Shown here piece after piece: positions 13,359-22,300 of a DNA stretch of 64,000 bases. The DNA is from Orbicella franksi (taxonomy: Eukaryota), in NCBI GenBank assembly GCA_964199315.1, contig OZ116711.1:3968001-4032000 (forward strand), written 5' to 3'. The position numbers and the translations under genes were made by a program. The notes below the pieces were generated by a model, which ran no database searches, was not told the DNA's origin, and was given only the letters and a program-made list of their open reading frames with translations. Numbering within the stretch: the stretch's first letter is position 1; each line of letters opens with the position of its first letter.

Positions 13359-16300
13359 CTGCTAAAAATGATATAAAATGTTTCTACTAAGTTGGCGAAT
13401 AAAAAAAATACTTAGCAGTAGTAAAATGTCTGTTAAAAAATGCGATTTGTATTTCTTTTTAGGACAGTTTTAATAGCATGAGTGAGCACTATCCCACATC
13501 ACTATTACGTAATACAAATTTACCCTCAAATCTTAAGATACCTCAAAATAGCTTTATACTAATCGTGTAAAATAGATTCCCATTACGGTTTTATTTCACA
13601 TGGGAGGTGCAGTAGTCTCTTAAGTTTGAACGTTGGCAGGAGTTTTTTTGTTGTGTTTTTGGTCAACACACTTCACTCTCACAGTGTTTCTCTCTACCCA
13701 TGAGAAATAATGGGTGCCGGTAACTTGTTGAGACAACTTGAGAAAACGCCGAGGATAGACCCTGCTATGGTCTGGAATGTCAACCGGGGGGAAGGAGGCA
13801 AGGAGTGGATACAATATTCATAGTTCCTTTATGCTACAGAAACCGGAACAAACCTCTGGCTTGAAAGCCTGCTATGTCTGAAGTCAGACTCGAATCTTTA
13901 TTTTAGGCAGTGTGCACACTACGCTGGAGGAATTTGAAAATGTGGCGTTACTTTTACGGTTAGGCCTACCGTGTAAACTAATCCGTCACGAAAACGGAGC
14001 TTTTCGAGAACGCTCTCCAAACCTGAGGAATTTTGAAAACGCCGGCTTTTCGTTTCCGTGTGGACGAAAAACATTTTGAAAATTTTTAAATGCCTCCGGC
14101 GTAGTGTGGACGGAAAACATTTGATGCGTTTTAAGGGTGAAAGCTGCGTTTTTAAATTCCCCCGGCATAGTGTGGATGGGACCTTAGTCTTTGATTGTGA
14201 TACACTGGTTTTCAATTGAGTGTCGTAAAACCATAACCAGACCAATTACCTACCAATTAGACTGCTCAGCCAATCTCAGACCGTAGTAAAACCAAAACCA
14301 AAACCAAAACCAACGTAATTACCTGATTACTTTGAACACTTAATTGAAAACTGCTCAACCTTAAATTAACCGCCCTATGGCTGACGCTTTGAGATTTAAT
14401 CCTTTGTCAAACGATCATATATACACCAACTCCGGCTGTTTGCAACTAGTAACTAGGTGTTAATAAATCGAACAGCAGCTTCACAAGATATGACTTACTA
14501 CGACCACCAGTTTGAGTAAGACGCGACGGAGCTTTGGTGTTGAAGTTTTGGACTTACGGTGTTGCCACGGGAAACTTTCCTCATTTCCAATGGTAACAGT
14601 ATCGTCGCCTGCACTTTCGCGCGCTTTGCTGCCAATGAAGTTTAAGGCCGACAAGTTGCCACTGGAAACGGAGCCAGTTTCCCGTTACCACAACACAAGT
14701 TGAGCGCTAAAACCTGGTCACCAAAATTTCGTCGCTTTTTACTCAACTGAGAATTGTAGTAAAAACAGCTGGCGATAGACAAAATAACGCAACTAACCTG
14801 ATTGAAAACACATGACTTGATCTCACTGATGCTTTGCTTCAGATCAAAGCTCGGCTGCTGCACTGTACTTTGAGTACTCTTGGAGATAGAACCGGAAGAG
14901 GTGTTCTGCTTTTGCGGAAGTGCGCTCTTTCTGTGCTGTACTTTCAGGTACACGATGATTGACAGGAATGCCACAATCAAAACTGCCATGATGGCGGAAA
15001 TGACGTAGATGGTTCGACCGACAGGTCGAACTTGTTCTTGCGTTTGTTTGTAACCTGTATTCACCGCAGGACCTAAACAGAGCGTGACAATTAGTAACGG
15101 CTTGCTTGCTTTCAATTGGGTTGTCACGCAACGGTGACACTCGCGCGGGGGATACTCGAGCATATTCATATTGTAAGTATTTAACGAAGAAATAACAGTA
15201 GGCCAAACGTTTTAACTGTAGGCACAACTGATTAGCTCAAGAGTTTCTTCGTGATCTCCACGATGTGCAAAGAATACGATTAAGGATTTTGTACTGAAAG
15301 GCTCTCGTTCTGATGTCAAGGGTGACTCCAACTGAAAACCATCTTCTTAGAAGCATAGCTGGTTACATGTAAGGAGGTTGGGTGGGGGACTGTCAGGTTA
15401 CAGTACAATACACTTATAGGATAGAGGAAACTGGACTGTCTAGGTAACATAAGTTATCACTTACTTATGTCAGAACACTTCTTTACATCACACAATTCCA
15501 CCTCATTCTCCGGTCCAACATAACACCACGGTCTCGCCCCAAGCCCTTCAGGATTACGGCAGAAGTTATGCGGGAGGTCCTTGTAAGGCCACTCGAGGCA
15601 GGGGCGTCCGGATTTCGTCACGTTCATTCGGCCAGTGTATGATGCTCCGGTGCCGTTATAGCAATCTATGACGTCAACAACACCTGTGTCGATTTAAATA
15701 CATCTACAACGAAAGGACTGACAATACGTACAGAAGAGCTACAATCCTGGCCAAAAGACCTGGGGACACTTGACAAAATGCCAACTGGTGACGAATTATT
15801 TTGAAGTGGGAAGTCATTATTCAATTTTCCGAGCCCCCCTTCCCCGAAAGCAATAGTGGGTCTACTTTGGATGAATCAACATCAACATTGTTTGGGGGGT
15901 GGGGAGGGGAAGAGGGACAGATAGACCATATGTTGGCAAAAGTGAATAGTGTCCCATGACGTTTGACCAGGATTGTAGCATAAGAACGCGATTTTTTACG
16001 TTACTAGATTTTTGTACTTGAAATCTTCACTAAGTGTCTATCTTTTCGCTACAAAAGAAGGAGACCACTCAAAAGTAAAAGAAATCCTAAATTCTGAGAG
16101 CCAAGAGGGTTCGCATTCCAAACAAATCTACTCATCTCCACCATTTGATGAAAATTTTGGAACACAGAATTGATTCAAGGGGCTAGGTCACGCTATTTTA
16201 GGTAATTTTGTTTAAGTTTGTTAATCATGAGTTCTAAATGTCAGATTGGCAGAGCAAAAGTCTTTCATTTGCAAAATCACGGCCACGTAACAACTGAGAA

Positions 16301-19300: not shown

Positions 19301-22300
19301 ACTTTCCGATGACACGGACAAATGAAAAGATACTGTCCTTGGTCGTTTCATGCACGTGTTTCCTACCTCGCAGGGATTTTCGAAGTTGGTTTTAATTGTC
19401 GTTGTTTTTGTGGCTGTCGGTGCGTTATTTCTGTTGATATGTTTAGTTGCTGTCATTGTTGTTGCTGAAATTGTTTCATAGTCCTTTAATATTCTTGTTG
19501 TTGTTATAGTATTTAACACCCACCTTACAGGTCCTGGTTCCGGGCGGCCAGTCTCTATAACCAGAAATAATAAGACAGTGTTTAAAACCAATCAGTTAAA
19601 CGCTGAATTGTTCTACTGCTCACTGCTATCTATTTTTAGCGTGACTTGCCAAGGTTCCGTCAGCATAATACTGTTAATCATACTTTTCAGGTTATTTCTG
19701 ACGATGTTTCTTCATTACTAACAATTCATTACCTGGTTTCACGTAGATTGGATCAGTATTAACTGTGGAATGAAATTAAAAAGAAATGATTGAGAAGGGA
19801 ATGATGGCTTTATTAAAAGTGTGAGGTAACAGCACAAATGCAACTCCCGAAAATGGGATTCAGACCGGCAAAAAATTCCCAGTCCAGTAAAATTGTAACG
19901 TTTGCGTACAAACAGGGTTTTCCCGAAAACGTTACGGTCAGGGACCTTTTTCTGAAACAAATTTTACTTCCAGCTCGAAGCTTTCATGAGAGAGGTTGCT
20001 TGGTAGCAATGAATGCTTAAGACGTATAGCTTGCATAACTGTCGGGGATTTCGTCCGCGAGTTCCTTGGAAAGTACCGTGTTCAACTTACACTCGCACTT
20101 GACAACTTGCAGTTGCGCGCGCAACCCCTCCCCTCCCCCAGTTATGCAAGCTACATGACGTCACGTATTCGTGCGTACGTCACGACTACCTACGGTGACG
20201 ACAATTCGGGACTGTTCAAGTGCTTCCGCAAAGATTTGTTTCTTAAAAGAGCTACTTCACGGTTTGCGTATCTTGAAGTTTAGTCTAATTTTTTTAAAAG
20301 TTCGTCGTTTGCAATCCGTGTTAATCTTCTCCATCCTTAACCATCCTTGTTCTATTATGGTTTATTATTATCTCTGTTTTTGTTTTTCTATCTTAGTTAA
20401 CTACTATTTTCAGGTTTCTTTCAATTCAAAGGCATTTTTGTACCTGGCCAAAATAAATCAAAGTACCGTTACTGAGATCCTTTAAAATATCACTTTAAAA
20501 TTCGTAACTCTACTGTGCAAGAAACACAACAACTAAGGCAGTCGCGACTCCAACTGCTAGTTTGAACTATGGACATCAAGAGAATTTGATAAGAAGTCAA
20601 TCCATTATGAAGTCAGCACAAAGAAACTGTACTTGTGATGGGAGGTGTGTTGAGAAATCCATTGATTTTCAACCACGCCTGCGCGGTAGCCATTCCTCCG
20701 GGACCTTTGGCCCTACACTGAAATATCCCAGCATCCTTCTTTTTAGCCCGTCGAATCCTGAGCCGCGATCCCCAACGGAAAGTAGTGACCTTGTAAGATG
20801 GGTAGGCTTCGCTGACAGACCGACCGTCCTTGAACCACGTGATGTTAGCCGCTACCTTTTTACTGCTCAGCCTGCACTTGAAGATGACTGGTTTGTTTTC
20901 GAACATTGTGATGTTGTTATCAAGACGGACTTTGAACTTGGGTACTGCGCATGGACAAACACACACACACACACACACAAAAAAAACGTTACTGGTTAAT
21001 GAGACGAAATCGCACCTCCAATACAAGATTACAACTTAACTGAACTTTCTGGACGAAATCTAAGTGTTGCGTTCATTTCAACAAAATGTGTTGAGCAAAA
21101 AATCTTCATGTAGTACTCTCAATTACACTGTATAAAGTGGTTTTAAAGTAGGGAGGTGTCTGACTTAAACCCTAGTGCATGTGTGACCATTCAAATGAAA
21201 GTTATGGTGCAGTACTTTCATGTGGTACTGTTTATTAAGCTGTACAAGGTGGTTCTAACTTTAAGTCTGTGGATGAAACCCTAGTGTGTAACCATTCAAA
21301 TGAAAGCTGTGGAGCAGGACTTTCGTGTGGTACTGTTTATTATGCCGTGCAATGAGTTTCTAACTTTAAAGTCTGAGGATGAAACCCTATTGAAAGCTGT
21401 TGAGTACCGTTTGTTATCTTAATCTTTTTGGATTATTATTATAATAGCGGTTTTGAGAATGTATGCATGAAGTCCGACACATACCTTGAGGGACCACTCT
21501 AATGCAACTCTTGTAATCAGGATGCCCCACAGCCGGCATACTGGAGCAATCAGGTAACAGAACCGACACAAACGGTAATTTTCGGGCACGCTCGAAATCC
21601 TCCTGACAAATATCATTCTTCAAAACAAGACAATCGTCCCTACAGAACTTCCTCGGCTTAGGTTTAGACTGCGACGAATCACACGGCGGAAAAGCGTAGT
21701 TACACAAAGTTGGTAGAACATAATCCTTACATCCGTCAGATACGTACTCCTTCAACATATCATAGTTCCTTCCAACGCGGCTCCCGTGCGAAACCTGGGA
21801 CGCTGTCTTTGAGTTGACATAAACTCGCTGGCCATCGAGGTAAGGCTTGCATAGCTCTCCACCAGAGTACAGTTCGCACGCTGCGAACCTGGAAAATAAA
21901 ATTTAAAGGATCAGAATTTAGGGTGGTTACCAATCCTCTTTATATTTGGCCTGTTTTATGCCCCTCCCCGTATCCCCGTGTCTTTCGACTTTCCCTCGCC
22001 CCGTCCCCCTCTCTCCTCCCCCTCTCTCCGTCCCCGTCCCCCCTCTCCCCGCCCTCCTCAGGATGTTATGTACCATGGTTTCGTTACCACTTCTTTTTTT
22101 ATTCGTGATGTAATTTTGGACTGACAAAGCCGAACGCCAGTATCAACATATAAACTCTCTTCAATTGTCTTCATACGTTTCCTGTATTACAGATTGGGAG
22201 AATTTATTTGCCAAACATATGCTTATTTCTCTTGACCTACAAGTTTGATTAAGTGTATTGATAGTGTCAGGAAAATTAGACATTATTATCACTCTTGTAA

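Follow-up and report, generated by a model that had tools for sequence, protein, structure and literature searches.

In the present study, we analyzed a 64,000-nucleotide stretch of Orbicella franksi DNA (contig OZ116711.1, positions 3,968,001 to 4,032,000; hereafter the window) and found on its minus strand a gene for a ROR-family receptor with two Frizzled-type (Fz) cysteine-rich domains (CRDs), the first (CRD1) before and the second (CRD2) after an immunoglobulin (Ig) domain. The receptor is real and conserved, and it is neither unique to the Orbicella genome nor recent. We consider, with high confidence, that the gene represents in Orbicella a type-I receptor of the ROR family that is conserved among hexacorallians, that its CRD duplication preceded the split of corals and anemones, and that the protein likely serves Wnt signalling as a co-receptor or scaffold independently of kinase activity. 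RefSeq already lists the gene under an automatic ROR name, 'inactive tyrosine-protein kinase transmembrane receptor ROR1-like isoform X2' (XP_020611795.1, Orbicella faveolata); this record was reached by searching exhaustively with the CRD1 exon and then in a word index.

The spliced model, which had canonical AG/GT (or GC) intron ends, comprised 12 exons between 29088 and 12492 on the minus strand and encoded a protein of 906 residues. Exon by exon, its identity to XP_020611795.1 was 95.5-100% (tblastn), and the spliced protein differed from that record at a single residue, Tyr in the window versus His at 287; polyA RNA reads showed an alternative base at 19745, in the codon taken to be that of residue 287. 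The encoded order was signal peptide, CRD1, I-set Ig, two microexons, CRD2, linker, Kringle, transmembrane (TM) segment and kinase. Exon 1 (29028..29088) carries the start codon and most of the signal peptide (spliced model; tblastn 100% to residues 1-20 of XP_020611795.1), and exon 2 (28472..28535; tblastn, spliced model) completes the signal peptide and adds a basic stretch rich in Arg and Ser; both exons lie outside the stretch covered by the RNA reads. After an intron of 6.6 kb follows exon 3 (21485..21888, 404 nt, phases 2 then 1), which holds the whole 10-Cys CRD1 and was identified by Pfam, RNA depth and a match to the structure 9fse. The I-set Ig domain occupies exon 4 (20633..20944, phases 1 then 1; Pfam and an I-set fold match), whose 3' end is spliced to 19762. 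It is followed by a 30-nt linker microexon (exon 5, 19733..19762) and a 31-nt microexon encoding a Pro-rich linker (exon 6, 19524..19554). CRD2 is divided between exon 7 (18895..19068, Cys1-2, phases 2 then 2; tblastn, spliced model and reads) and exon 8 (17953..18197, Cys3-10, phases 2 then 1; Pfam Fz and spliced reads). A 57-nt exon 9 (16801..16857) links CRD2 to the Kringle; it matched residues 441-459 of XP_020611795.1 at 100% in tblastn, had spliced reads, and was modelled with a low predicted local distance difference test score (pLDDT). The Kringle (Pfam) forms exon 10 (15465..15665, phases 1 then 1, skippable in frame), the TM helix and a Ser-rich juxtamembrane segment form exon 11 (14798..15072; tblastn, with the hydrophobic stretch read in XP_020611795.1), and exon 12 (12492..13358; Pfam, PDB matches and motif table) encodes the ROR-type kinase, then a stop codon, without a C-terminal tail.

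The original prediction, made from the letters of the window, had described two complete 10-Cys Fz-type CRDs in one reading frame flanking an Ig domain, and Pfam located two Fz stretches in XP_020611795.1. The limits that it gave, 21888 and 15465, matched to the base the 5' boundary of the CRD1 exon and the 3' boundary of the Kringle exon. The spliced model also agreed with it in placing CRD1 on a single exon before the Ig (21888-21485), in splitting CRD2 by a phase-2 intron, which was bridged by spliced reads (18195/18893) in two RNA sequencing (RNA-seq) runs, and in assigning CRD-Ig-CRD-Kringle, then TM segment and kinase, to one gene. The two microexons between Ig and CRD2 and the 57-nt exon between CRD2 and Kringle had been overlooked; all three have spliced reads.

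The identity of each extracellular domain was supported by profile, sequence and fold comparisons. The raw translation of the CRD1 exon matched Pfam Fz at 5.8e-12, the Ig exon matched Ig_3 (1.7e-10) and I-set (5.4e-10), the second half of CRD2 by itself matched Fz at 4.7e-06, and the Kringle exon matched Kringle at 4.1e-15. Against the PDB, the best match of CRD1 alone was the human ROR2 CRD-Kringle structure 9fse (7.3e-23), followed by Drosophila Nrk and MuSK, and no Frizzled or sFRP chain was among its sequence matches at E<=0.001. CRD2 together with the Kringle matched 9fse at 1.1e-40, with the alignment running across both domains, and no Frizzled or sFRP chain occurred among the 60 best listed matches. 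AlphaFold models were built from ortholog alignments, with a mean pLDDT of 81 for the first (CRD1 and Ig) and 74 for the second (CRD2-Kringle). The modelled CRD1 superposed on 9fse at 2.3 A over 142 columns, the modelled Ig fold matched I-set Ig domains, and the modelled CRD2-Kringle matched 9fse, 7me4 and the MuSK Fz domain; no Frizzled CRD was found among the 50 best fold matches of either model. Judged by sequence and modelled fold, both CRDs are of the ROR type. [quoted passage not shown] CRD2 had been predicted to be the more ROR-like of the two, and this was borne out to a modest degree, with 38-40% identity of CRD2 to vertebrate ROR1/2 CRDs versus 32-33% for CRD1.

The two CRDs could belong to one receptor only if the CRD1 exon is part of the same messenger RNA (mRNA). 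Four polyA RNA-seq runs were mapped to 16700-22699. It was observed that two of them (X23 and X24) covered every exon in this interval, and the remaining two covered none. Spliced joints with CT..AC ends were found at 19762/20633, 19554/19733, 19067/19523, 18195/18893 and 16856/17952; these correspond to introns 4 to 8, including the intron within CRD2 and the introns around both microexons, of which exon 5 was supported by 19762/20633 and 19554/19733 (X23, X24) and exon 6 by 19554/19733 and 19067/19523. The CRD1 exon was evenly covered at a depth of ~25-50x (both mate orientations summed, X23/X24), similar to or somewhat above the depth of the Ig and CRD2 exons, and the depth was zero upstream from 21900. 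Thus, the junction check proposed beforehand was answered in part: five joints from the Ig exon to exon 9 were recovered, and the CRD1-to-Ig joint (21485/20944) was absent from the joint table. The Ig-exon acceptor lies two bases from a (GT)n run (20946-20991) that was flagged as a skipped repeat; one joint was dropped at this run by the read mapping, and its identity as the CRD1-to-Ig joint could not be confirmed. In addition, no Orbicella fragment spanning the junction was present in the protein collection, where the matches were single-exon genomic open reading frames (ORFs) carrying Fz or Ig alone.

The missing junction and the 6.6-kb intron between exon 2 and CRD1 could speak for CRD1 being carried by a separate upstream gene, or for the two-CRD model being a fusion made by gene prediction. 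Transcript contigs of other corals pointed the other way. The Logan contig L001 (4818 nt) contains an uninterrupted 906-residue ORF with Fz, Ig, Fz, Kringle and kinase, and L002/L003 (~4960 nt) contain uninterrupted 903-residue ORFs of the Fz-Ig-Fz-Kringle-kinase layout. With eleven introns in the gene, uninterrupted contigs of this kind must derive from spliced mRNA, and the three of them match two other-coral proteins. In Orbicella itself, the phase-1 donor of CRD1 fits the phase-1 acceptor of the Ig exon, and neither end of the CRD1 exon carries an in-frame start or stop codon of its own, the frame running straight into a GT donor. The CRD1, Ig and CRD2 exons were moreover alike in depth in the same two runs, with zero depth just upstream of 21900. 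The cDNA contigs and the RNA coverage made a separate gene or a prediction artifact very improbable, and we are nearly certain that CRD1 belongs to this mRNA in Orbicella.

Some of the RNA signal in this interval fell on intronic repeats. A 187-nt direct repeat (86% identical) was found at 17016-17202 and 20299-20485, in introns 8 and 4; RNA reads were several times deeper over it than over the exons and showed loose ends as well as joints from one copy to the other, which fits a multi-copy transposable element transcribed elsewhere. Intron 8 also contains a 64-nt inverted repeat (17269-17415; 97% complementary, 19-nt loop) with an RNA depth of ~10x that of the exons in X23 and many reads with an internal 48-nt skip. 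This could be an element resembling a miniature inverted-repeat transposable element (MITE) or a processed hairpin. In intron 3, an 85-nt unit occurs twice in tandem at 21180-21369 (copies 86% identical), and RNA reads 'go back' between the copies; the copy number of this unit probably varies among individuals.

The two-CRD layout was found widely among hexacorallians. By Pfam, the Fz-Ig-Fz-Kringle-kinase order was present in Oculina patagonica, in an XP model and cDNA contigs of Acropora, and in another four transcript proteins from corals. The Actinia tenebrosa model showed Fz-Ig-Fz-kinase without a Kringle match, and the Nematostella vectensis 'ROR2' model (1187 residues) contained four Fz stretches. 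When nine anthozoan orthologs were aligned, all 10 Cys of CRD1, all 10 of CRD2 and the two Cys of the Ig domain were invariant, and CRD1 was about as well conserved across corals and anemones as CRD2. Single-exon CRD1 ORFs also occurred in many coral genomic contigs. A profile search with the nine-ortholog alignment returned hexacorallian proteins and then bilaterian ROR1/Ror proteins (Lingula, Patella, Protopterus, Ischnura); octocorals and medusozoans were not among the matches, which carries little weight because the index is word-based. Hexacorallians thus have two ROR genes, and in one of them the two-CRD layout is standard, with RefSeq records in Orbicella, Acropora, Oculina, Actinia and Nematostella. 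The original prediction knew of no description of this architecture; the databases show it to be standard in hexacorallians, and full-text searches, outside which lay Yan et al. 2014 (Gene 533:229) and Ka et al. 2021, returned no paper describing a multi-CRD cnidarian ROR. An Acropora-type cDNA contig of 2576 nt encodes a receptor missing exactly the Kringle segment relative to the Acropora XP model, which suggests a Kringle-less isoform; skipping of the Kringle in frame is possible because the Orbicella Kringle exon has phases 1-1.

The age of the second CRD was examined with a maximum-likelihood tree of 63 ROR-type CRDs. Separate phylogenies of CRD1 and CRD2 had been suggested beforehand as a check, and the tree resolved two distinct clades, an anthozoan CRD1 clade with support of 94/92 and a CRD2 clade with 100/98, each with members from both stony corals and anemones; the three additional CRDs of Nematostella were lineage-specific copies of CRD2. 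Since both clades span Scleractinia and Actiniaria, the duplication predates their split, and the two-CRD state is, on the tree, older than that split and no recent insertion. CRD1 has no intron and CRD2 has one, and on this difference the original prediction had proposed that an extra CRD was shuffled or retrocopied in. That origin was contradicted by the two clades, by the shared phases and by the single-exon CRD of the neighbouring ROR paralog. Phases of 2 then 1 flank the CRD1 exon and the pair of CRD2 exons alike, and each CRD unit stops 7 residues past Cys10. Because these phases are asymmetric, a CRD1 exon could not simply be inserted in frame into an intron. The intronless state is no sign of a retrocopy, because the CRD of the canonical neighbour is likewise a single exon with phases 2 and 1; gain of an intron in CRD2, or loss elsewhere, would more simply account for the difference. 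With same-position CRD1 orthologs from Acropora, Oculina, Actinia and Nematostella in one clade and single-exon CRD1 ORFs in many genomic contigs of corals, there is hardly any chance that CRD1 was inserted recently in Orbicella or its close relatives.

The paralog just mentioned bears on where CRD1 came from. The two-CRD gene lies at G000:C14, and a canonical ROR gene (Ig-Fz-Kringle-TM-kinase) is located directly downstream on the same strand. Its Ig exons were found in the window at 4710-4543 and 3818-3696 (minus strand); its CRD follows ~0.9-1.4 kb beyond the window start, and then the Kringle, TM segment and kinase, this part of the gene lying at G000:C14:3962560-3967120 (L050, minus strand), just left of the window. 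The paralog CRD is one exon with phases 2 then 1, and its kinase motifs are degenerate (HGD, DVA). Orthologs of this paralog are Acropora cervicornis KAK2550057.1 and Nematostella XP_048585384.1, both named 'ROR1'. The Nematostella protein has Val at the VAIK Lys, which fits the inactive Nematostella ROR homolog mentioned in PMC4100928. The two neighbours share the ROR family, the strand, an adjoining locus, the CRD phases and a degenerate kinase; the paralog differs in having one CRD, the Ig-CRD-Kringle order and the loss of other catalytic residues, and its kinase scores only slightly lower against MuSK than against ROR2.

This arrangement would allow CRD1 to derive from the tandem paralog, by unequal crossing-over or fusion between neighbouring ROR duplicates that put the 5' portion of one copy, up to and including a CRD exon with a phase-1 donor, in front of the next copy's Ig exon with its phase-1 acceptor, with later loss of the first Ig. 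Such an origin would concern CRD1 only and not the identity of the gene. The single-exon, phase 2-then-1 CRD of a same-strand neighbour supplies a suitable donor, the contigs of both ROR genes in Nematostella have one length, 22.17 Mb, and are read as the same contig, and CRD1 scored slightly above CRD2 against neighbour-type CRDs (75.6 vs 65.8 bits). In approximately unbiased (AU) tests, a clade of CRD1 with the neighbour type was not rejected (p 0.49), but neither was CRD1 with CRD2 (p 0.47), nor CRD2 or CRD1 with bilaterian ROR, the p values ranging over 0.25-0.49. The free CRD tree left its deep nodes unsupported, and tblastn detected no Ig remnant upstream of CRD1. Since CRD1 is somewhat closer to the neighbour-type CRD and CRD2 somewhat closer to vertebrate ROR, the fusion stays alive as a sub-hypothesis, which we rate as possible but rather doubtful.

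Further Fz loci outside this gene were also observed. At least 10 additional loci, each with an Fz domain and a Kringle 1-3 kb from one another, were found at G000:C13:17.746-17.802 Mb, C13:20.79 Mb, C8:19.48-19.53 Mb and C8:28.17-28.21 Mb. Their CRDs were only 22-27% identical to a bilaterian ROR CRD (P0017) and served as the outgroup of the CRD tree, and kinase sequence occurred only as short fragments in two of the stretches examined; they may represent an expanded Fz-Kringle gene family in this coral. Dense arrays of strong Fz matches (E about 1e-31 to 1e-33) were located at G000:C15:8.675-8.706 Mb, with several per single open frame (672-736 residues), and at C14:2.24-2.26 Mb, in separate short frames (~190-270 residues); these may be multi-Fz proteins unrelated to ROR.

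The kinase exon matched Pfam PK_Tyr_Ser-Thr at 4.6e-76. Among PDB structures, it scored best against ROR1 (6tu9, 7.3e-72, 245 bits), followed by ROR2 (1.6e-67, 231 bits), with MuSK (5.9e-56, 193 bits) and Trk/TrkA clearly lower. Alignment to the ROR kinases revealed that the VAIK Lys, the alphaC Glu and the HRD Asp are retained, whereas the DFG Asp is replaced by Asn (SNLG motif) in 9/9 aligned orthologs; the motif table sets five of the nine against the ROR kinases. In the Gly-loop, Ala or Ser takes the place of the third Gly, and the HRD motif reads HCD in Orbicella and Oculina. Loss of any one of three residues (VAIK Lys, HRD Asp, DFG Asp) defines a pseudokinase, and with the DFG Asp lost the domain falls within this definition. 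The kinase is therefore predicted to be catalytically impaired, as had been proposed from the start; both the Asn in nine orthologs and the replaced Gly-loop residue argue for this. The TM/juxtamembrane exon was among the best conserved, with 74-84% identity to Nematostella, Acropora and nearer corals, compared with 42-75% for CRD1 (tblastn), and this conservation fits a scaffold role. A kinase tree was tried for orthology. Both anthozoan clades stood on long stems, and the two-CRD gene joined a long tunicate branch, probably by long-branch attraction; the tree was not used for orthology because it had no outgroup. On present evidence, neither anthozoan ROR is assignable one-to-one to vertebrate ROR1 or ROR2, and the names 'ROR1-like' and 'ROR2' obscure two distinct anthozoan ROR architectures.

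In non-canonical Wnt signalling, RORs are the principal co-receptors, and the way in which the ROR CRD receives Wnt is unsettled. We propose that a ROR-type CRD exon unit was duplicated before stony corals and sea anemones diverged, that the anemone lineage later gained more copies of CRD2, and that the receptor most probably acts as a kinase-independent Wnt co-receptor or scaffold with Frizzled, by analogy with ROR2 and Nrk. The CRDs would be its ligand-facing modules. CRD2 and the Kringle, near the membrane, would do ROR2-like work, and CRD1, carried on the Ig domain and the Pro-rich linker, would be either another site for ligand or a module with an accessory or regulatory role. The gene structure, its expression, the domain identities, their conservation, the age of the duplication and the loss of the DFG Asp are established by the results above; Wnt binding, the part of CRD1 in it and the pseudokinase behaviour are what we infer. 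The ROR2 CRD has been reported to be required and minimally sufficient for WNT5A signalling in complex with Frizzled and to have no lipid pocket of the usual kind (PMC11219042), and the Nrk CRD holds a buried fatty acid and probably does not accommodate a Wnt acyl chain (bioRxiv 10.1101/2021.04.29.442059).

Several points weigh against the proposal as a whole. Besides the CRD1-to-Ig joint and the junction-spanning Orbicella fragment that were not recovered, our sampling left out octocorals and medusozoans, and the AU tests favoured no placement among CRD1, CRD2, the neighbour CRD and bilaterian ROR CRDs. As neither the ROR2 nor the Nrk CRD offers a usable lipid groove, a 'Wnt-binding CRD' does not give a simple Frizzled-like picture. 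CRD1 might serve something other than Wnt, such as self-association, autoinhibition of CRD2, or binding of another partner (Frizzled, a proteoglycan or a lipid). It is the less ROR-like of the two CRDs and is held well away from the membrane by an Ig domain as spacer; the ROR2 and Nrk CRDs have no accessible groove for an acyl chain, and the mechanism of Wnt reception by RORs is unclear. Yet all 10 Cys of CRD1 are kept, its conservation is about that of CRD2, and its best match in sequence and structure is still the ROR2 CRD. We hold a non-Wnt function of CRD1 to be a minority possibility, and Wnt co-reception by the receptor stays the preferred reading. A bolder extension, which we regard as unlikely, is that the hexacorallian multi-CRD RORs form a distinct ancient ROR subfamily in which the Ig-borne CRD1 is a second, independent ligand site. 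If so, a single receptor could hold two Wnts at once, in line with the bivalent binding that the original prediction considered possible, or could link a Wnt to Frizzled, and the number of CRDs (two in corals, four in Nematostella) could tune Wnt selectivity amid a large Wnt repertoire. A conserved two-CRD ROR beside a one-CRD canonical paralog offers a natural comparison for the role and valency of ROR CRDs, and Nematostella is genetically tractable. The Nematostella 'ROR2' gene has been linked by expression to polyp elongation (PMC12549020).

Compared with known receptors, the coral protein has neither a Frizzled nor a MuSK identity. A Frizzled or sFRP assignment was rejected in view of the single TM segment and kinase, with no Frizzled or sFRP chain among the listed matches. 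MuSK shares Ig, an Fz CRD and a related kinase; its Fz structures were weaker matches, and it has three or four Ig domains and a single CRD, unlike the one Ig, two CRDs and Kringle of the coral receptor. With these counts and a kinase score of 193 bits versus 245 to ROR1, MuSK identity was also rejected. Two CRDs recur in a holothurian 'ROR1-like' protein (XP_071851449.1 and its isoforms, which cluster with an Apostichopus japonicus protein) of the Ig-Fz-Ig-Fz-Kringle-kinase order. It differs in having intact HRD and DFG motifs and an extra N-terminal Ig. In the tree, its second CRD grouped with deuterostome ROR CRDs and its first with CRDs of crinoid giant proteins, not with anthozoan CRD1, so that homology of the echinoderm and anthozoan two-CRD RORs received no support; the holothurian protein is most simply read as an independent gain. 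The crinoid proteins (Antedon, Anneissia) are 2017-2981 residues long with three ROR-type Fz CRDs near the C-terminus, and one is named unc-89-like.

The closest relatives are vertebrate ROR1/ROR2 and invertebrate Ror (CAM-1, Drosophila Ror/Nrk), with which the coral receptor shares Ig, an Fz-type CRD, a membrane-proximal Kringle, a single TM segment and a ROR-type kinase-like domain. ROR1/ROR2 structures were the first matches for its kinase, CRD1 and CRD2-Kringle, and degenerate catalytic motifs are common to it and the vertebrate RORs (PMC4100928). The coral receptor differs in the DFG position, which is Asn where the vertebrate RORs keep Asp, in a longer linker between CRD2 and Kringle, and in ending right after the kinase without the Ser/Thr- and Pro-rich tail. 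Above all, it carries an additional ROR-type CRD N-terminal to the Ig (four CRDs in Nematostella). It thus has the 10-Cys Fz-type CRD, the Kringle after the CRD, the Ig before CRD2 and the ROR-subgroup kinase of the family, but departs from the canonical single-CRD order of Ig-CRD-Kringle; with its extra CRD before the Ig, it is therefore a variant of the ROR family rather than a canonical member.

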